Source: Paraphysomonas bandaiensis
Taxonomy: Eukaryota > Protista > Chrysophyceae
NCBI GenBank assembly: GCA_965644295.1
Contig: CBFFRP010000394.1
Span: 1 to 64,000 of the forward strand
Direction of reading: 5' to 3'
DNA: 64,000 nt
Shown piece by piece: positions 6,814-46,487 of the stretch. The notes under the pieces were generated by a model. The model saw only the letters and a list, made by a program, of their open reading frames with translations. It made no database searches and was not told where the DNA came from. Each line of letters starts with the position of its first letter. The first letter of the stretch is position 1. Position numbers and translations under genes: made by a program.

Positions 6814-7754
6814 TCACTCCGCGGACAGATGGTGAGCGTTCTCGGGGGAGAAATCATTCATACTCTGTGCCTCCGAGAGGCTAATAGCTGAAAAGCTTAT
6901 TCCTAGATCATTTAAGCTTTCCACCACCTGCAAATCATTATGAGCCTCTGCGGAAGTGGTTGAGACAGAGGATAAAGACACCGATCGCACTCTATTTGGG
7001 GAAGACAACAACAGCTGCACCGGCACGGGTTCTCCCTGTGGTAACTGTGGTGATATAATAGGGCTTATAACAAGAGGAACGGGGGTTCCTTCTCCGCCGT
7101 TAACACCCTCTTCAAAGAGGTGCTGTCCTATGCGAACAAATATCTCGTGCGGGATGCGCCCGCTGCTATCCGGAGAGGGGATAGAGGGAAAGCAATCATC
7201 TGTTGCAGACGATGTGGAAGACCCTGCATCCTGTCGGCAGGTCGGACAGACCGAGGTCACCACAGACTCATCCGTTAAAGTCCCCAGGAACCATATATCC
7301 ACACAAGCTCGATGAAAGCAGTGCGAACATTTCAAATTACGGATTTCATCTCCATCAACAAAAGCTTCCAAACAAATAGGACATATAGGAGCATCATCAT
7401 TCGCAGAAGAATTATTCGAGGTAAAAGTAGACATGGGTATTTCATCCAGCGCTTTTCTAGCTATATGTCTATCCGCAAATTTATTCTGTTGAATATCACA
7501 ATTAAACATAAGACAACAGTAACAACGTAAACACACACCTGTCGTGATAACTGTATCTGTGATACAAACTGAGTGTTTCCAGACGTATCGTCCCCAAGTA
7601 TCTCTTTGAGCCCTTGATTATGTGATGGAGAGTGACGGAATGTACCCACATGAGGACTTGAGTTAGGTAAAAATATACGATTCTGTGATGAAGATGCTAG
7701 TCGAAATGTTCCATGAAAGAAACCCACATAAGGATTGTGTGGTAAGTCGCTCAT
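6814..7754 (-). CDS. RING-H2 finger protein (putative E3 ligase)
   Basis: CPICLEAF..CSHCFHRACVDIW..CPTCR. Exons 7754-7539 and 7485-6814 join in frame across the GT-AG intron 7538-7486. Confidence 0.9.
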
Positions 7755-16196: not shown

Positions 16197-16262
16197 GACT
16201 AAGATGTGGATGAGACTGACATTAACCTAACTGACACACATCATATCCATATATGACACACA

Positions 16263-16391
16263 CATACATACATACATACATACATACATACATACATACA
16301 TACATACATACATACATACATACATACATACATACATACATACATACATACATACATACATACATACATACATACATACATACATACATAC

Positions 16392-16422
<31 letters not shown>

Positions 16423-16598
16423 CATACATACATACATACATACATACATACATACATACATACATACATACATACATACATACATACATACATACATACA
16501 TACATACATACATACATACATACATACATACATACATACATACATACATACATACATACATACATACATACATACATGCATACATACATACATACATA
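16263..16598. repeat. (CATA)n microsatellite, ~335 bp
   Basis: Seen directly; starts ~65 bp upstream of the SET gene ATG. Confidence 0.99.
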
Positions 16599-21305: not shown

Positions 21306-21439
21306 TGTATGTATGTATGTATGTATGTATGTATGTATGTATGTATGTATGTATGTATGTATGTATGTATGTATGTATGTATGTATGTATGTATGTATGT
21401 ATGTATGTATGTATGTATGTATGTATGTATGTATGTATG

Positions 21440-21471
<32 letters not shown>

Positions 21472-21609
21472 TGTATGTATGTATGTATGTATGTATGTAT
21501 GTATGTATGTATGTATGTATGTATGTATGTATGTATGTATGTATGTATGTATGTATGTATGTATGTATGTATGTATGTATGTATGTATGTATGTATGTAT
21601 GTATGTATG

Positions 21610-21641
<32 letters not shown>

Positions 21642-21783
21642 TGTATGTATGTATGTATGTATGTATGTATGTATGTATGTATGTATGTATGTATGTATGT
21701 ATGTATGTATGTATGTATGTATGCATGTATGTATGTATGTATGTATGTATGTATGTATGTATGTATGTATGTATGTATGTATG

Positions 21784-21815
<32 letters not shown>

Positions 21816-21838
21816 TATGTATGTATGTATGTATGTAT
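21306..21838. repeat. (TATG)n microsatellite, ~530 bp
   Basis: Seen directly; between the divergent RasGEF and Psf2 starts. Confidence 0.99.
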
Positions 21839-24364: not shown

Positions 24365-27300
24365 TTACACTTGGAAAAAATTTAATATGTTACTACGCGA
24401 CATTTTTTCCTCCAATGCGGAAACTCTTCGCTGCAGTTGTCTATTCTGAGAATGACTCAAGCCTAACTCGTTATTTAGTTCTGCGACTGCCATTTTCGCT
24501 AAAATTAAATCCTACAATTTCGTCACCAGTCAAAAGTAAAAGTGAAAAACACAACATTACCTGAGCTAAGCTTTCAATATCATGCTCCTTAGATCTAGTC
24601 GTATCTCCTTGGTCATCTACACTATTACTTGCGTAGGACCTTCTATATTCCTCAAGTTCAGCCCGAACAGTGTCAAGCGAGGAATTCATCTGTTGTCTAC
24701 ATTCCTCTAGCTCCGATGTTCTGGCTTCAAGTTCCAACCGAAGGTGAGACAGTTCCGCAGAGCTGGCATCAGTAGTACCACTGTGCAAAGACGCTATTTC
24801 AGCTTTCAGTTGTCTATTTTCATCACGAAGTTCGGATACAACTCGATTTGCATCCCGCTCCTTAACACTTAGCTCCTTCTCCAACTTATCTACAGTCTCA
24901 GAATAAGTATCGCATTTCTCTTCCAATTCCGCATTCGCCATACTTAACTCTATTTCCTTCGCGATCCATTCTTTATTCATGCGATCAAGCTCGCTCTTTA
25001 ATGCAGATACAGTGGCGGTAAACTTAATCTCCCGTGCATGGTATTGACCCTCTCTATCTGAGTCATACTTCTCGCAATCCGGCACCTCAAAAACTTTTTT
25101 ACCCAAATCAACTTCATCCTTTAGAGAAGCAATTTCTGCATACGCGACCGCCATTTTACTCGCCGAATCAACTTCTTTACCGTACAGTTCATCTCTCAAA
25201 CTCTTGACGTCTCTCTGAAGAGCTCCAACAGCAGCTTTATATGCAATGACATCTGCATCATAAGTGGCCTTGGCATCAATAAAAGAGGCTTCCTTCGCCT
25301 GCAATGCTGTAGATGCATCCCGAAGCTGCTCATCACGAGAAGATATCTCAGCCCTCAAACTATCCAATTCTGATCGTAAGGATGCCAATTCAGACTCATG
25401 TGCACTCTCACTAGATGATAACTCCGATTGCTTCGCCTGCAATGCTGTAGATGCATCCCGAAGCTGCTCATCACGAGAAGATATCTCAGCCCTCAAACTA
25501 TCCAATTCTGATCGTAAGGATGCCAACTCAGACTCATGTGCACTCTCACTAGATGATAACTCCGATTCCTTCGCCTGCAATGCTGTAGATGCATCCCGAA
25601 GCTGCTCATCACGAGAAGATATCTCAGCCCTCAAACTATCCAATTCTGATCGTAAGGATGCCAACTCAGACTCATGTGCACTCTCACTAGATGATAACTC
25701 CGATTCCTTCGCCTGCAATGCTGTAGATGCATCCCGAAGCTGCTCATCACGAGAAGATATCTCAGCCCTCAAACTATCCAATTCTGATCGTAAGGATGCC
25801 AACTCAGACTCATGTGCACTCTCACTAGATGATAACTCCGATTCCTTCGCCTGCAATGCTGTAGATGCATCCCGAAGCTGCTCATCACGAGAAGATATCT
25901 CAGCCCTCAAACTATCCAATTCTGATCGTAAGGATGCCAACTCAGACTCATGTGCACTCTCACTAGATGATAACTCCGATTCCTTCGCCTGCAATGCTGT
26001 AGATGCATCCCGAAGCTGCTCATCACGAGAAGATATCTCAGCCCTCAAACTATCCAATTCTGATCGTAAGGATGCCAATTCAGACTCATGTGCACTCTCA
26101 CTAGATGATAACTCCGATTCCTTCGCCTGCAATGCTGTAGATGCATCCCGAAGCTGCTCATCACGAGAAGATATCTCAGCCCTCAAACTATCCAATTCTG
26201 ATCGTAAGGATGCCAATTCAGACTCATGTGCACTCTCACTAGATGATAACTCCGATTCCTTCGCCTGCAATGCTGTAGATGCATCCCGAAGCTGCTCATC
26301 ACGAGAAGATATCTCAGCCCTCAAACTATCCAATTCTGATCGTAAGGATGCCAACTCAGACTCTCAGACTCATGTGCACTCTCACTAGATGATAACTCCG
26401 ATTCCTTCGCCTGCAATGCTGTAGATGCATCCCGAAGCTGCTCATCACGAGAAGATATCTCAGCCCTCAAACTATCCAATTCTGATCGTAAGGATGCCAA
26501 CTCAGACTCATGTGCACTCTCACTAGATGATAACTCCGATTCCTTCGCCTGCAATGCTGTAGATGCATCCCGAAGCTGCTCATCACGAGAAGATATCTCA
26601 GCCCTCAAACTATCCAATTCTGATCGTAAGGATGCCAACTCAGACTCATGTGCACTCTCACTAGATGATAACTCCGATTCCTTCGCCTGCAATGCTGTAG
26701 ATGCATCCCGAAGCTGCTCATCACGAGAAGATATCTCAGCCCTCAAACTATCCAATTCTGATCGTAAGGATGCCAACTCAGACTCATGTGCACTCTCACT
26801 AGATGATAACTCCGATTCCTTCGCCTGCAATGCTGTAGATGCATCCCGAAGCTGCTCATCACGAGAAGATATCTCAGCCCTCAAACTATCCAATTCTGAT
26901 CGTAAGGATGCCAACTCAGACTCATGTGCACTCTCACTAGATGATAACTCCGATTCCTTCGCCTGCAATGCTGTAGATGCATCCCGAAGCTGCTCATCAC
27001 GAGAAGATATCTCAGCCCTCAAACTATCCAATTCTGATCGTAAGGATGCCAACTCAGACTCATGTGCACTCTCACTAGATGATAACTCCGATTCCTTCGC
27101 CTGCAATGCTGTAGATGCATCCCGAAGCTGCTCATCACGAGAAGATATCTCAGCCCTCAAACTATCCAATTCTGATCGTAAGGATGCCAACTCAGACTCA
27201 TGTGCACTCTCACTAGATGATAACACCGATTCCTTCGCCTGCAATGCTGTAGATGCATCCCGAAGCTGCTCATCACGAGAAGATATCTCAGCCCTCAAAC

Positions 27301-29596
27301 TATCCAATTCTGATCGTAAGGATGCCAACTCAGACTCATGTGCACTCTCACTAGATGATAACTCCGATTCCTTCGCCTGCAATGCTGTAGATGCATCCCG
27401 AAGCTGCTCATCACGAGAAGATATCTCAGCCCTCAAACTATCCAATTCTGATCGTAAGGATGCCAACTCAGACTCATGTGCACTCTCACTAGATGATAAC
27501 TCCGATTCCTTCGCCTGCAATGCTGTAGATGCATCCCGAAGCTGCTCATCACGAGAAGATATCCCAGCCCTCAAACTATCCAATTCTGATTGTAAACCTG
27601 ATAAGGTTGAGTTCTGGCTTTCTTGTTGAGATTGAAGTTGCAGTTTTAGTGTTTCTATTTCTTTTTTGTGTTCTTCCTCACTCTGCTCTACAGTGGAATA
27701 TAAGTCATTGTAATCGTCCATTTTTGCTGACAAAGCTCGACGTAGTCTTTCACACTCTTTTATTGCTTCTGCATCATACGACTCGCTCTTTATAGCATCT
27801 TTCATCGTATTTCTTAGACACTCTAGTTTGAAGTCATTTTCTTCCTGTTGCACCCGTAACTGGTTGTTGAGATATGTTATTTGTGAAGTATTCAAGTCGA
27901 TGTCTTCTTGCATGAATGATATATCTTGGAGCTTGGCAAATAACTCCGATCTGAGTCGATTGTTTTCTGCTTTGAGTCTTGTATTCTCGGCGAGGACATC
28001 ATCTGATTGGAGTATCAATGACGACACTGTCGTGCCCACACTATCGATATCATCAGTCCAACCTGCGGATTCATCCTGGCCCTACAATTCTGTAGTTAGG
28101 TGGATAAGAAGGGGCTAGAATTACAAGATTTACCGAGTTAACAGACTTCCCATCCGTACTAGACGCCATTCCAGGCCCCACTGCACTGCTTAGTGCGGCA
28201 CTAAGCTTTAACTTCATATCATCACATGTTCCCTCTAGCTTTGACACATGCTGCTGATATTCCACTTCGCGCTGACGCATTTTAGAAATCGCAGCACTCA
28301 GCTTTCCCTTGTAAAGGGCAAGTTGCTGCTGTAAATGCTTCACATAAGGATCATTGCTGTTGTCATCGTTAACAATGGCTTTGCTAACGATGAGTTTCGC
28401 TCGCTCGACATATCGCAGCGTGTTCATAGATTCGCTGTAGGATGCGTCAATAGGACTGATGGTAGCTAGTATAGTGGTTTTACTGTTTCCCCCGAGGCTA
28501 TCTTTCAGTATCCACGTCAGTATGGAATTGCGGTACGGCACAAACTTATCCTCTGATTCAGAACTATCAGAAAGTGCTCTGATGACATCACCCAGTACAG
28601 ATAGAGACCGGTTTATATTGGTGGCCTCCTTAAGTCTGTCGCCGGTTGCTCCAGTTGAGTTAACGCGCTCGCTTCCAGCAAGATCAATTAAGCAGACTTT
28701 GCTCCTCCGCTGGATGGACTTCTTCTCACGCTGAGATAAATCATCTGCGTTGGCCTCTTTCTGACTTGGCACTAAAAGCTCTATATGCTGCTTCACGAAT
28801 ATAGTGAAGATAGCATGCGACCGAGAACTTTCAGCATTCATCGCTGTTTCTGCCACCTGTCTCTTGCTGTGACCTTCTTCCAGTACACTATGCACGTCGT
28901 CGTAGCACTTAACAGTTCGCATAACCAGGCCTTCCACAAAAGCCCCCTCTTTTGGATGTTCGCGCACTTTACAAGTACTGCCAGGCTTATCGGACAACAG
29001 ATCATATATGCGTTCATTGTACACTTCATAGTACCCGACATGGACCTCCGCAGCAACCCTCTTTTCCAGTTCGCTGTCCCCAGAGCTAGCTTCATCTATC
29101 ATCCCCGATGTTGGACTATATATTTCATGAAGTAAGTCTTTACATAGCCTGGGAATAACACCAGCTTCATCGTCATGAATGTTTCCCATCATCGTGTGGG
29201 TCTTTCCACTCCCAGTTTGTCCTATACACATGGTTCAGCATTACATTACAAAAGACAACATATCATACCATATGCAAAAAGAGAACAATTAAGTCCTTTT
29301 AAACAATTCTGAACAATCGGCTTTCCAATCTCATTATATATATCCCGCTGACCACTATAGTGATTATCAGATTTAGAAAGTGACCAAAATGCAAAATCAT
29401 ATGAAAAATCCCTTTCATTTAATGATTTTTCTTTATCTGATTTTCCATTTGTTTGAAAAAACTTGGGATTTAATATAAGTATTTCCTTGTTGTGTTTCCC
29501 TGGAGATACTATGATTTTTCTATGATCGTTAATTTCTTTTGATGAGAGGGGACGTATGCGTACAGCTGTTATGACGCGATTCGTTTCGATGTCCAT
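24365..29596 (-). CDS. Kinesin-3-type N-terminal motor with a very long repetitive coiled-coil tail
   Basis: AVRIRP, FSYDFAFWS, FAYG|QTGSGKT, KVREHP, NAESSRSH, DLAGSER, VPYRNSILTWILKDSLGGNSKT. Introns near 29.25, 28.1 and 24.55 kb; last exon DLILAKMAVAEL..QV* (24511-24365). An 8-bp duplication near 26356-26371 breaks the frame. Confidence 0.9.
25290..27590 (-). repeat. Coding tandem repeat, 138 bp (46 aa) x ~16.6
   Basis: Unit SELASLRSELDSLRAEISSRDEQLRDASTALQAKESELSSSESAHE; copies are nearly identical at the DNA level. Confidence 0.97.
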
Positions 29597-29720
29597 TTTA
29601 GGGTTGAGAGGTATGGAAGGGTGTATGGATAGGAGGGTCAGGACATGTTGACAAAGAGTAGTTAGAGAATAACAAATGCTTCGATTTAAAATAACAAGAT
29701 AGCTAACTGTACTGTACAAA

Positions 29721-30324
29721 CATACATACATACATACATACATACATACATACATACATACATACATACATACATACATACATACATACATACATACATA
29801 CATACATACATACATACATACATACATACATACATACATACATACATACATACATACATACATACATACATACATACATACATACATACATACATACATA
29901 CATACATACATACATACATACATACATACATACATACATACATACATACATACATACATACATACAAACATACACATACATACATATGTACATACATACA
30001 TACATACATACATACATACATACATACATACATACATACATACATACATACATACATACATACATACATACATACATACATACATACATACATACATACA
30101 TACATACATACATACATACATACATACATACATACATACATACATACATACATACACACATACATACATACATACATACATACATACATACATACATACA
30201 TACATACATACATACATACATACATACATACATACATACATACATACATACATACATACATACATACATACATACATACATACATACATACAAACATACA
30301 CATACATACATATGTACATACATA
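29721..30324. repeat. (CATA)n microsatellite, ~600 bp
   Basis: Seen directly; between the divergent kinesin and p101/PACS-like gene starts. Confidence 0.99.
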
Positions 30325-30641
30325 TACTGCTGTATACCATATCCAACTGGTGCAGTATTATGATACACAACACACAACACAACAATGCTGTACGCGTAGA
30401 TGTGTGTGTATACGTGTACAAGTATGTATATTTTGGTAGTGTAGAAGATCATGTTAATGTTACTTGCAACTAACATACATATATACATACAATAACATCA
30501 TACACACCCGCTTATCACTCCTATCATAAAGAAGAATAACATAGGAAGGATAATCCCTTCATCTTTCTATTCTTCATCATGATTTCAAACATATTTCGTT
30601 CAAGTAAGAATATTAATTCAGCGGGTAAAGTAACTAAAATT

Positions 30642-33600
30642 ATGGCCTCTGAAAGTGCAGATGATATCGCTAAAAGTATTATTAAGTAAGTCTATATATA
30701 GAATAGTTTAAATTCTTATTAAACTCTATTAAAATAGTGGGGATATTGTACTGGTCCCAGGGGAATATGCCAGTTTTTGGAGTAGTATAACACGTGAAAG
30801 ATCCACCTGCGCCCGTTATATGGCTCGTATAGTTATCCTTCTTATTAATTTGGAAAAAGATCAAACAAAGACCGAAAAAGCACTTTTAAATCATAAATAC
30901 GGAACGATTGATAACTTTATCACGTTACTATTGAATACTATTCAGTTTCTGGATATATTTGTTGGTTTTGATCCCGCTAATGAGGCATATATATCTGCCA
31001 TGGAGAAATATGATATGGCTAAGAAGGCCACGCCTATATTCAAGAATAAACGAATTGATGATGGTTTAAACGGACTTGCAAGGAGAAGGGCTAATAAGGG
31101 AAAGACTGCGGTAAAAATGCTGGTTGATTGTTCCACGTTGGAGTCTGAGGTACATGCCTGTATATGCCGTTCAGTGTGCTGTACTTGTAAGCAATCCTGC
31201 GTACTAAGTCTATGATTAGGAGGAAATGAGACACTCCGCGATGTCTGATATCACCTGCTCTAGTGTGATGACTATTGATCGGTCCGATGTGGAGTTTAAT
31301 ACAGAGTGCTCATTGGTTGATTTCCCATTCACTTTCACAGCGTTGACTAGGATGACAAGGGCTGATGTTTCCCCCCTAATATTTGATGAAGTTTTGAAAC
31401 AGTTAGAGGGAGCGGTAAGATGAATATATGTCAATATATATAGTACTGTTGTTTTGCATTTATTCGTAGTTACCGTCATGGCTGATTAGATTAGGTTGTT
31501 CTTTTCTTGTTTACATGACTTACCGATGAATACGTGTAGGGCTCAGCATTGTCGTCTATGGCCGCAATGCAAGGCCGCACACTTGCACTTATGTTCATGC
31601 TGAGGGAGTTTCTTACCATCAGTCCTACTGCTGATCAGGTACTACATCTTAAGTTTTGCATATTTTAGAGTAGTGCTCAGTAGATGGTATATTGTCACGA
31701 TATTGTACTGCGATGCATAGGGAAATAGGATCTTTGCAGCCATATTTTAAAATTAATACATGTCTATAAACGTCCAGTTATCTTATCACATTGTATAGGC
31801 ATGGATGCATCGCGCTGGTGAGGTTTTAATTGGATTGTACAAGTGGCCACGACCGTACGGGTTAATTGCTAGAGATCTGCTGGAGTTTATATCTGTAGAA
31901 AAAAGATCACCAGGTGACTGCTATGATCAATGTTGATGTGCTACAAATACAACTTTTATTTACAAATTATACACGCGGTTACGTATATATATAGGGTATC
32001 ATTTACGACAACGAATTTTAGCGGAAAACCCCGACATGCAGCCCTCAGTGATGTGTCATCAGTGTAAAGGTACCCCTCTGGATGCAGCAGTTCCCTACCT
32101 TCAACACATCGATGATCAGTACTACTCCACTACCTCTAGCCACGTTTATCTCTTTCTTGACAAATCTCAGCCACTCTGCTGTACGAACCGCTATTTGCTT
32201 CTCTCAGAATTACGAGACCGCAGTGATACGATTGAATCTAGTTCATCTGGTATGACGGCCATGTCGAAGCATATGTCGACCACGACACATGCACTATCAA
32301 CTGCTGGTCAAGATCGCCTGTTGTCTCTAAGACGTGAGATTTTATTACATATTCTGGATTTAGATTTTTGCATTCGAGATAAACCTCCACCCGGAGTGAA
32401 AAATGCAATCGTGGACTCTTTAGGGCTTGATGGCATGGATGAGTGGCAGGTCGCCGTGTGGTACTGTCGTGCATTGGCTATAGTAGAGAAAGCAAAGGAG
32501 CTCCCGGTGCACTCTACAACCACCGAAAAGGACGGGGTGAATAGGGGTGATGAGTCCACAGGTATTCTTGCACGAACCGTGCACCGTTACACCTCATTGT
32601 GTCACCGTGTAAATGGTTTGAATGAATATGTATATTTATACCCAGCTTTGTGGCTACTGTATGCTAAACCGAATATCAGGTCCCTCAATGCAAGCTATGT
32701 ATGGCTCCATTCCAGGCGGCCTAGCTAAGTTGTACCGCGAGAGCATGTTGGCTGAGCTTCTCCATGAAATTTGTCCCAATAAAACCTTTGCTCCTCGTCG
32801 AAGTGAAAATATAGTGCCTTCTGATAAACGGAAGTCTTATAATCGGCCTCCAAGCTTGTCATTTCCCCTAACGTTAGAAGAAATACAATCTTGCAAGAAA
32901 GGTGAGTACATACCCATGTACAGTACATTGGTGTGAATAGGAAGAATAAGAGTATATGTTTTCATCGGAGTTAGATATCGTTTCCTGTATTCTTGGGAGG
33001 AAATTTAATAGTGTTATATAGATCAAGACGATGTATGCAATGACACATCTGGACCAGCACGAGATAGTTCAGCCGAGGCCACAATGGCGGACGTTTCATC
33101 TGCCACGTCCGAACCGGCCCACCCCAAGCCAGAGCATGCTCTACAACCTCCCGTGGTGTTTGGGCAACAAGCCCCACACCTCCCCGATTTAACCTTTCAA
33201 GTGTATGACATTGAAGTTGTAGGAGGTAAGTGTCGTGTAACCTTAGTGTAGTAAATTTCTTCCATGATTGTGTGGTTGAATATGCTGAACCAGAAAAGTG
33301 CTATTGATAAATATTTGGTTATATATATTGAGATAGCTTTGTCGATAATTTCTAATTTTCTAATGCGTTAAGGAGGGCCTGAGTCAATGGCAGCCGCCCC
33401 ATCCACGAAGACCATCGATGTCAAGAGTGGGTATGGAGAATTGCGGAATACCTACGGATATGTACACATATACCAGGTATAGTATAGGAGAGAAGGTTAC
33501 ATATCCTGTGATAGCACTAGCATATACTACAGTATATATAGAGAATATATATATTAGCCTGACACATCGACGTGTCCGTTCGGTATTGACTTTTTTGCGT

Positions 33601-36100
33601 AGGATTCCGATTGCATAATGAAGATGATCAGTGATGTTCTGACGACGTGGAATGAGCTGTATGGAGACCCGCAATCTGGATCTGTGGAGCCTGCTCAAAA
33701 AATTCTCGTGAAAGTACGTGCTTACATGTTGTGCTATAAATACAAACTGTTTTCTATTGGTATGATATTTTTAAGTTGCACACATGTATTATGCTGTTGA
33801 TGGGATTAGTGACTGCGAATTATACTAATCCCAATCTAATATTTTTTTGTAGGCGGTGCTAATGGGGTGCAACATTGTCATACATCGCTTTCTTTGCGCA
33901 TATGTTGTGTTACTTACTGATCATCCTGATCTGACGAGTAAAATAGACGTAAGTATGTCTGCTTTACTGCTTATTGCAATGTTTTTCGTATGGGTGGAAA
34001 TGAATTGCTATCCGCAGTCATAGTTTCACACACTCTTAAGGAGTTGTATTATATGCATAATTTCTTATTTGCAATATTTTTAGCTTCGCCTTTACCTGGT
34101 CCCTGTGGGAAATAACAAATTGGGAACCTTTCTTGCTCGCTCTGATAAATGGTACAGAAGACACATATATGATTCTTTTAGAGGCCCCTTGGGTATTTGT
34201 CCTCAGGTGAGTTACTATATTTATAGGCTTGTTATTTTTAAAAAAATCGTGTTGGTCGTTACGTGTGTTCTGTTATAGTACCCTTACGACTCAGAGTGCT
34301 CTGTTGAATCACTTGAAGATTCGGGAATTCAAAAGTCATTACCTGTAACTAGCTTACGAAAACTTCTACAAGACTATGTTCGACAAGCCAATAACACCTA
34401 TAACGTGTGTGTTTTTGAAGGTGTGCGACATTGGGGATTCGTATTTAGATAAATTTATGTGTATTCTAGATACTAAAGTTTTTGTAAATGTTGTGTTTAG
34501 CTTGTATATGTGACGAAATCAACTGTCCTAAATACGTCTTTTGCTGCACAGTACTTTGTTGGGCCGCCTCTGAAGAGCCTACGTCCCCTTCGTCCTCATC
34601 CCCTCGTGCCTCTGGTAGCTTCGAATCTGACGACCCATCCACTCTTCTACACTCCCAATCAAGTCCAGATATTGTGATACCGTTTGTAATGCAAATTGAA
34701 ATAGGTTTTAAGGCCCAGCTCGAAAGGTTCAAACATGCACCAATGGAGACATTACATCAGAAGCAGCCATTGAAAACAAGTATGAATTTTACTGCCAAGG
34801 CGACACCGAAGGTATGAATCTATTTGTCTACAGTTGTGAATTTGCATGAGTGCGAGTTATTAGCGGCAATTTGTCAGGTTGCTTGCAATACATATGTAGA
34901 CAGATATATAACCTGAGGTATTTGCTTTTTATATGTATATTCTCACTCACAGGAAATTGTTATGGACCGGGACTCACATATATCACCCATCGAGCTATCG
35001 ATATCCTATATGCCGTGCTCTATGAGTGGCGCCGCAACCAACCGTGGAATGCCCAACAAGGACCAGACTAGTGCCATGAGTAAAATCGACTCCTACGCAA
35101 ACTTAAGTTTCAATAATTTCCCCATGGCTAGGTGAGTTGCTGTGACATTGCGCGTAATACGTACAAGTTTTCAGTTTTATATGTTGTTCATACGTACGCA
35201 TTTACGTGTTCCTTCCACTATACACAATATGTCTGTGTGCGGCTGCTTGTATGTATAGAGATACATTTGCACATGCTGTGTATTTATTTTCATCCTTCTC
35301 TTTTTTTGATATAGTTCCTCCCGAGATGACTACCTTGGTGGCTCTTCTGAAGGAGTCGACCAACAGCTTGTGCCCAATGCCCCTCATGTTAATTTTCTCG
35401 TGATGAACACTCAGCCTTGCAAAGGTATAACTCGTAGCTTACTATTTCGTCTCCTTGTCCATAGCGTATTTCAAACGGTAAATACAACTTCCCTGACATT
35501 TGCTCAGGTCCGCTCTACGATGCATATGTAGCACGAAAGAGAAACCAGCGGTCCGTGGACGAATTTTTTAAAGCACTGAAGGACCCTGAATCGTTTGAAA
35601 GCCCACAGGCAATAGGAGCTGTGGAAGTGGATGTGATAAATACCAAAGACAAGTTTCATAGTAAGAGCTATTACGTTGGGCATGCCATGCTATATGTCAT
35701 GAATTTGTTTGCTTTGCATAAGTTGTGATATTGATGTTCTGTTTTTAGTTTTGGTCGATGGAGCACTCTATGGTCCGTTTAGAAGGATTGTAATCCGTTC
35801 GTGTCAGGTAAATAAACTGTTCCGTGTGTTTTATTTTTTCAATAGGTAGTTGTGTGGGAATATGTTCAGTTTATGTCAGTTGGGATGTATATATGTTGCG
35901 TCGACGGTAATTGTGTATATTACGTTTGTGTATTGCTCTGAGAGGCATGTTTGCTATAACTGATTGAAGGGCAATATGCGCCACTTTCGTGTTGTCTGAT
36001 AATGCTGTGACGGTGCTAACCTTAGGTTGGAGTGGAGGCATCATCAGATCATGGTATTGCTACTGTGCCCATTATGACCCATATGCCAATAGGTTTCTAA
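30642..36100 (+). CDS. Multi-exon protein related to PI3K class IB regulators p101/p84 and the PACS C-terminal region
   Basis: Hand-spliced pieces: LYKWPRPYGLIARDLLEFISVEKRSP|GYHLRQRILAE; VK|AVLMG..HRFLCAY..|LRLYLVPVGNNKLGTFLARSDKWYRRHI; LLQDYVRQANNTYNVCVFE; VIPFVMQIEIG; VLVDGALYGPFRRI; PIMTHMPIGF*. Full exon structure is approximate. Confidence 0.7.
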
Positions 36101-36926
36101 GATGAATGGGACGAGGTGCGTCGTGTTTTCAACAGTTAGTTTGCAATTTGTAAGGGTTAAATGGTGATAATACTAGACATGATGTTGTAGTTGGTAGTAG
36201 GTGTCAATGCTGTAAAACATTGATTATGCAATTGATGCCAATTTTTAATCAATTAGAACTAGTTTTTATTGTCTGAATTTAAACGGTAGCGATTGTAGTA
36301 ATAATTATAAAACTGGGTGGGTTGCTTAAATCGTATTAGGATAGTAGCACATCAGTGTATAGTGTATAGGCGCAAGTATGCGCTCACACATTGCTACAAT
36401 TATTTCATTGAATTTATTTCGTCATTTTTCCCACCTTAGACTACCACATGTGGTTGGACACTTTGGAACCTATTCCTAATTCCCCAAAACTGAGTTTTGC
36501 ATATTATTTCCCTTTGTGTTACAACTTTTTTAATTTTTCTCAGTGGGTGTATAATCGATAATATAAACGAATACAGCCAATCAATAGAGGCGAATAAGTG
36601 TTAATGATTATTTTACGGTATGTGCACCGCCCTGAGATAGTACAAACGCCGCACAAGTAGTTTCTAAATAATACTATATACCGTAAAAAGCAAACAACAA
36701 TATGAACCTTCTATTTGTTCTGTACCACTTCCGAAAATACACACCCTGGCTACGAATTCGAACATATTCATAAATATTTCGAAGGAAATAATATATTTCA
36801 CAGTATTCGAGCCATGATACAACGCGATGACAGTGCCCAGATAAGCTTGACTTCTATATTACCTGTCTCACATGCCATACGCTGAATATCATTGCACGTA
36901 GGAACTTTTGCAAGTTGTTAGGTGTG

Positions 36927-45957: not shown

Positions 45958-46088
45958 TATGATGCATAATGGAGGAGGAATGTATGTGGTGTTTGTTAAT
46001 GTGGACTGGTTGCACTGAACCATTCATACATATACACACACATCGAGACACTGCCCACGGAATACCTTATACACCACGTATATGTACA

Positions 46089-46487
46089 CATACATACATA
46101 CATACATACATACATACATACATACATACATACATACATACATACATACATACATACATACATACATACATACATACATACATACATACATACATACATA
46201 CATACATACATACATACATACATACATACATACATACATACATACATACATACATACATACATACATACATACATACATACATACATACATACATACATA
46301 CATACATACATACATACATACATACATACATACATACATACATACATACATACATACATACATACATACATACATACATACATACATACATACATACATA
46401 CATACATACATACATACATACATACATACATACATACATACATACATACATACATACATACATACATACATACATACATACATACAT
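46089..46487. repeat. (CATA)n microsatellite, ~400 bp
   Basis: Seen directly; between the divergent RAP-repeat and NTPase starts. Confidence 0.99.

Follow-up and report, generated by a model that had tools for sequence, protein, structure and literature searches.

We describe here a gene on the forward strand of a 64,000-nucleotide stretch of Paraphysomonas bandaiensis DNA (contig CBFFRP010000394.1, positions 1 to 64,000), referred to below as the window. Positions 30642-36100 are the exact ATG-to-stop span of one expressed gene with 19 exons, from a Paraphysomonas-like chrysophyte, with a coding sequence (CDS) of 3270 nt and a product of 1089 residues. The cytosolic protein that it encodes is best seen as a divergent, deep-branching homologue of the PI3K regulators p101 and p84, or a variant of them, with a PACS-like C-terminal half.

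The locus is without a long open reading frame (ORF); it shows instead numerous short open frames on the forward strand, which bear the motifs quoted in the original prediction of a p101/PACS-related protein. That prediction had blamed many introns for hiding the gene from the ORF track; the gene model has 19 exons. All 18 introns are of the GT..AG type. Public transcript assemblies placed on 30400-36399 gave at least 15 GT..AG joints, and the same joints were found in polyA metatranscriptome contigs. Each joint was set to its GT..AG position and the exons were joined to check frame and length; exon 4, the one exon missing from the contig pieces listed, was placed as the sole GT..AG open-frame solution that fits the length required by the transcripts. 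The transcript contigs begin at 30482 (X1 and X4) and 30499 (X2). Because single contigs (X2, 3501 nt; X4, 3533 nt) span all 19 exons and run past the stop, this is one gene, as had been predicted, and not two. The gene model is independently confirmed, since the peptide P0017 (MMETSP1103, Paraphysomonas, taxid 36769, Chrysophyceae; 1089 residues) agrees with every exon in register and is identical at 1066 of the 1072 residues compared exon by exon. Since P0017 equals the protein of the window, it was taken as full-length reference in the protein-level analyses, and the exons were searched singly.

The start codon is either 30579 or 30642. An in-frame upstream ATG at 30579 lies within the transcript, and the ORF that it opens (30579..30689) continues through the ATG at 30642, giving a product of 1110 residues with 21 additional ones (MISNIF...). 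The MMETSP peptide P0020 (1110 residues, ‘type:complete’) uses this upstream ATG, while another peptide call does not.

The transcripts also carry sequence variation. X1 and X2 differ from the window at one base (C>T at 32464), while X4 (labelled as another organism or strain) and X5 (from marine metatranscriptomes) have about 20 single-base differences over 3.5 kb (30517-36150). These differences point to a population sampled in the sea at about 0.6% divergence.

The N-terminal half and p101/p84

p101 (PIK3R5) and p84/p87 (PIK3R6) are the regulatory subunits of class IB PI3K-gamma, an enzyme of immune cells. They have been dated to vertebrates by Philippon et al. (2015), who state that p101/p87 ‘appeared very recently (in Vertebrata)’, report the Pfam family PF10486 only there, and ask what regulates class IB-type catalytic subunits outside vertebrates (PMC4617754). 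p84 is the sole human protein more than 20% identical to p101 (Rathinaswamy et al., 2021; PMC8397274). The literature that we searched contained no paper linking p101 with PACS and none on a non-vertebrate p101.

Against PF10486 (PI3K_1B_p101; 861 profile positions, curated cut-off 23 bits), P0017 scores 27.0 bits (E 1.3e-6), above the cut-off, with residues 232-300 on profile positions 77-144. All but one of the 17 family members match the profile at E up to 0.1 (16/17), the best at 31.4 bits (E 6.1e-8), and a few score under the cut-off, for example P0014 at 21.4 bits. The 45-residue open frame 31799-31933, which holds exon 5, matches PF10486 when searched alone (E 2.9e-5, 22.5 bits, profile 99-138), has p101 (7mez_B) as its best PDB sequence match, and is the sole six-frame match to the profile in the 62.6-Mb genome. 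Exon 2, which codes for a helical extension further upstream, has no paralogue that we found in the genome. The quoted motif WPRPYG..LLEFI..EKRSPG is in exon 5, and the strings quoted for p101 itself, WPVPYC..LLTFIDAELKAPG and LGMLDPWY, are present in the p101 chain of PDB 7MEZ.

A profile of the protist family, searched against 177,635 distinct PDB sequences, retrieved p101 residues 100-152 (E 2.7e-4) as its sole match below E 0.5; the next two rows are at chance level (E 0.6 and 1.8). The same profile sets LARSDKWYRRH against p101 605-624, a second, non-significant stretch that is colinear with the N-terminal match. No stretch of the protist family is more conserved than the block of residues 221-301, which contains the helical hairpin around the motif and is the part shared with p101/p84. 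The N-terminal 520 residues are predicted to be helical or disordered, and p101 provides the sole Pfam match there.

The structural comparisons start from a mediocre model: the full-length AlphaFold2 (AF2) prediction, made from 17 sequences, has a predicted local distance difference test score (pLDDT) of 40 overall and of 60-80 in the N-terminal helices. With this model, the top two Foldseek matches among 350,542 chains were p84 (8aj8_B, E 3e-3) and p101 (8so9_B). VIA-align likewise ranks p84 and p101 first, and the helical N-terminus superposes on p101 11-275 and p84 3-261. The original prediction had expected p101/p84 to be recognizable in the N-terminal part, and the Pfam, PDB and structural searches each recovered it.

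In mammalian p101, residues 25-175 are sufficient for binding (PMC8397274), and in p84 as in p101 the contact is made by the alpha3-alpha4 and alpha5-alpha6 loops and involves conserved aromatic residues (PMC10068899). The matched p101 stretch 100-152 (helix - TWPVPY - helix) falls within 25-175 and, going by residue numbers and not by coordinates, would be the alpha5-alpha6 hairpin itself. We consider it very probable that the chrysophyte protein is homologous to p101/p84, the proven part being short.

The C-terminal half and PACS

Among Pfam families, Pacs-1 (PF10254; 413 positions, curated cut-off 25 bits) ranks first for the C-terminal half (residues 600-1089). In a full-length search, P0017 687-814 falls on profile positions 74-183 (E 0.0087); as isolated C-terminal halves, P0017 reaches E 1.4e-3 and P0018 E 1.1e-4 (21.8 bits, profile 59-239). 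The match is found in 11 of the 17 members, including every member with a complete C-terminal half. The claimed resemblance to PACS holds as far as the best family is concerned, and stays below the curated cut-off, with at most 21.8 of the 25 bits. HMMER found no p101 match in the C-terminal half, the C-terminal family profile found no match among the PDB sequences at E up to 10, and a six-frame genome search with PF10254 gave no match because the exons are too short.

The motifs quoted from this half are in forward-strand frames: exons 12, 13, 14 and 19 carry LYLVPVG..LGTFLARSDKWY, QDYVRQA, IPFVMQIEIG and PIMTH, respectively. VLVDG had been read through an intron, and the spliced protein has ILVDG at the junction of exons 17 and 18.

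Language-model features of residues 640-1089, a region without overlap with the hairpin, place three p101/p84 clusters nearest (0.91, 0.90 and 0.90; 15 of 30 matches) and a Pacs-1 cluster next (0.86). Once the p101 clusters are left out, Pacs-1 accounts for each of the three best named clusters (0.87, 0.83 and 0.83). On the tool's own calibration, such scores count as leads and not as proof. The PACS C-terminal region (CTR), which makes up half of a disease protein, is without a defined function or structure (bioRxiv 10.1101/2025.11.05.686565). A protein that bridges p101/p84 and PACS is consistent with all the data, the basis being sub-threshold matches and features.

A representative search with exon 6 as query gave 10 relatives at E up to 1e-3, with no animal proteins among them, and word-based searches that took the family alignment, the P0017 C-terminal region and a C-terminal alignment as queries gave family members only, including about 40 further fragments. 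The named relatives, from Paraphysomonas MMETSP1103 and P. imperforata MMETSP0103, share 41% identity; the remaining ones come from marine assemblies. Other data sets contain full-length peptides of 1074-1177 residues that share this layout, and a subgroup with about 28% identity keeps the motif, still matches PF10486 and has both ends on one contig. The gene is unlikely to have been acquired recently from an animal, because it has 18 GT..AG introns and the family members are only 28-41% identical to one another.

Candidate partners and genomic surroundings

The original prediction had suggested looking for a class I PI3K and for G-beta-gamma in the genome. There is a single RBD-bearing, class I-like PI3K, on contig C395, with the layout WW - RBD - C2 - PIK - kinase, and there are several G-alpha genes. 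An exon-wise genome scan for G-gamma gave no match and is uninformative on absence, since control genomes were equally blank. A prediction of the complex between the C2/helical part of this PI3K and residues 120-520 of the p101-like protein, made without alignments and with the partner fold uncertain, scored 0.00, which is evidence neither way.

The C395 PI3K gene (L010, G000:C395:179000-188999, minus strand 8045-4809) consists of two same-frame open frames, of 269 residues (WW, RBD) and 809 residues (C2, PIK, kinase). They are separated by a single stop (7236-7238), for which the options are a tiny intron, an assembly error and a read-through site. Its WW domain stands where an adaptor-binding domain (ABD) would be. 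A second PI3K-like gene (L003, G000:C125:175112-178603, minus strand) has the layout C2 - PIK - kinase, with its PIK domain at 181 bits. A GAF-domain ORF (E 1e-12) lies directly upstream on the same strand, and the two may form a GAF-PI3K fusion.

Table 1. Parts of the p101-like gene in the window; residue numbers are those of the 1089-residue protein, and UTR stands for untranslated region
Feature	Position	Strand	Evidence and remarks
5' UTR to transcript contig limit	30482..30641	+	contigs X1, X4; holds in-frame ATG 30579
Exon 1, CDS start, residues 1-14	30642..30685	+	joint 30685/30738 in X1, X2, X4; identical to P0017 1-14
Exon 2, residues 16-152, N-terminal helical extension	30738..31149	+	136/137 identical to P0017; single-copy in genome
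Exon 3, residues 153-217	31220..31414	+	transcripts, P0017
Exon 4, residues 218-250; Pfam p101 match begins at residue 232 = base 31582	31540..31638	+	33/33 identical to P0017
Exon 5, residues 251-288, helix-turn-helix YKWPRPYG..LLEFISVEKRSPG, core of p101/p84-like motif	31799..31913	+	PF10486 match
Exon 6, residues 290-477	31995..32561	+	p101-like match ends at residue 300 = base 32029; low-complexity linker, then conserved helices
Exon 7, residues 479-551, conserved PGGLAKLYRE..PRR block	32680..32901	+	transcripts, family alignment
Exon 8, residues 553-619, largely disordered linker	33022..33225	+	transcripts, AF2 model
Exon 9, residues 621-654	33373..33476	+	transcripts
Exon 10, residues 655-691; Pacs-1-like stretch begins at residue 687 = base 33699	33603..33713	+	transcripts, Pfam
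Exon 11, residues 692-723, first beta-alpha unit of C-terminal domain	33853..33948	+	transcripts, AF2 model
Exon 12, residues 724-764, LYLVPVG..LARSDKWYRRH, most conserved C-terminal block	34084..34206	+	
Exon 13, residues 765-811, LRKLLQDYVRQA	34279..34420	+	spliced frame
Exon 14, residues 813-898, IPFVMQIEIG; Pacs-1-like stretch ends at residue 814	34552..34811	+	spliced frame, Pfam
Exon 15, residues 899-957, poorly conserved	34953..35131	+	transcripts
Exon 16, residues 959-994	35315..35424	+	transcripts
Exon 17, residues 996-1045	35508..35660	+	transcripts
Exon 18, residues 1047-1065, (I)LVDGALYGPFRR	35749..35807	+	transcripts
Exon 19, coding part, residues 1066-1089, conserved P-I/V-M-T-x-M-P tail	36026..36100	+	stop 36098-36100
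3' UTR	after 36100, to at least 36268	+	transcripts

Around the gene, the window contains four (TACA)n microsatellites of 340-610 bp, at 16258-16598, 21306-21838, 29715-30324 and 46088-46487. The third of these is directly upstream of the p101-like gene, and another array (L010 8346-8950) is upstream of the C395 PI3K gene. The idea that the arrays are a regulatory feature common to the two genes was rejected, as there are four in the window alone; since they are so dense, they look like a genome-wide habit. A 138-bp unit is repeated 16.7 times with 98% identity at 25290-27595, within long minus-strand ORFs (24471-28039). These repeat ORFs are adjoined by a kinesin-motor-like ORF (28071-30421; RVITAVRIRPLSSKEINDHRK..SLFAYG), which stands head-to-head with the p101-like gene. 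Together they may encode a kinesin whose tail is built of a very regular 46-residue repeat.

Possible role and comparison with known systems

The hairpin would probably correspond to those N-terminal helices and loops which make up the principal contact between p101/p84 and p110-gamma's C2 domain with its flanking linkers. If so, the protein would probably dock on the C395 RBD-C2-PIK-kinase PI3K, and membrane or G-protein signals would be coupled to this PI3K through the C-terminal domain of the docked protein. One origin would be common to the C-terminal domains of p101/p84 and of PACS, with the protist family as a sequence intermediate. We infer the binding, and regard PI3K adaptor as the most likely role of the protein, a view that we hold with modest confidence.

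Several points weigh against this interpretation. The PF10486 match spans only 68 of the 861 positions of a model that takes in solenoid, barrel and GBD (77-144; the widest among members is 73-155), all Pacs-1 scores lie below the 25-bit cut-off (15.6-21.8 bits, E 1.1e-4 to 0.015), the AF2 model of residues 600-1089, made from 36 sequences, has a pLDDT of about 46, and the C395 PI3K is without an ABD. The original prediction had proposed both an ancient common ancestor of p101/p84 and PACS and a role in PI3K regulation. That prediction is borne out in part; we keep these two proposals in the conditional because the Pacs-1 match is sub-threshold, the p101 coverage is short and the C-terminal fold is unmodelled. 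As that fold gave no usable model, the p101-PACS superfamily in particular is put forward as a hypothesis.

The protein could also be a true relative of the p101/PACS group that does not bind PI3K, a membrane-trafficking or scaffold adaptor like PACS in which the hairpin is a structural element and not a conserved docking site for PI3K. By HMMER its C-terminal half is nearer to Pacs-1 than to p101, the candidate PI3K begins with a WW domain and has no ABD, other class I PI3Ks are said to lack the C2 features specific to p110-gamma, and PI3K binding gained no support. Yet the hairpin block, at residues 221-301, is the family's most conserved stretch and exactly the part common to p101/p84, the N-terminus is helical with no PACS-type FBR domain, and even the C-terminal half is nearer to p101/p84 than to PACS in language-model features. 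We judge a scaffold that does not bind PI3K to be rather unlikely, though it is the main alternative. It is distinctly improbable that the resemblances are short motifs which a lineage-specific scaffold of unrelated origin acquired by chance or convergence, since different methods and both halves converge on the same two families: Pfam E-values go down to 6e-8, p101 is the only PDB match below E 0.5, p84 and p101 lead the Foldseek matches, atlas features from a non-overlapping region agree, and the weak matches are colinear with p101. It would be very surprising if the interval held two genes or if the long protein were an assembly artefact, given the single contigs from independent studies that span the 19 exons, the peptides of the same layout found elsewhere, and the 28%-identical subgroup with both ends on one contig.

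p101/p84 have been held to be vertebrate-specific, yet the chrysophyte gene carries a p101-like start and a PACS-like end, which suggests a much older shared origin. We tentatively propose that p101/p84-type adaptors predate vertebrates, that they belong to an ancient eukaryotic superfamily from which the PACS CTR also arose, and that the chrysophyte family has kept both signatures and serves a non-animal class I-like PI3K as its adaptor; this combined proposal is possible rather than probable. If true, it would explain how p85-less class I PI3Ks are regulated outside vertebrates, and the orphan PACS CTR would gain a fold and a testable function. The protist family provides a candidate PI3K adaptor outside animals, and we offer the hypothesis that the C-terminal domains of p101/p84 and PACS are one domain family. 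The WPxPY hairpin and the LARSDKWYRRH block are highlighted as a set of conserved residues. Should the link consist of a short shared motif only, the finding would shrink to an unannotated lineage-specific scaffold.

Among known systems, the PACS proteins offer one comparison. As in the CTR of PACS-1 and PACS-2, Pacs-1 is the top family for residues 600-1089, and PACS comes second after p101/p84 among the feature neighbours. Unlike PACS, the protein is without the FBR (C2-like) domain, the atrophin-like region and the middle region, and its N-terminus is p101-like. The diacylglycerol kinase / YegS / sphingosine kinase fold, which pairs an alpha/beta domain with a beta sandwich, is a lead for comparison, and no match of this type was found in Pfam, Foldseek or VIA-align. 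In contrast to the p101/p84 system, the host is a stramenopile and not a vertebrate, its candidate catalytic partner carries a WW domain and lacks an ABD, the C-terminal half escapes the p101 profile, and the N-terminal region is longer, with p101 residue 11 aligning near model residue 134 in VIA-align. The protein resembles p101/p84 in its size and layout, in that the N-terminus is helical, the disordered linkers are long and the C-terminal alpha/beta part is conserved; it shares with p101 a colinear L-x-x-x-D-x-W-Y motif in the C-terminal part, and with both p101 and p84 the helix-turn-helix W-P-x-P-Y .. L-L-x-F-I .. P-G, where the match is significant.

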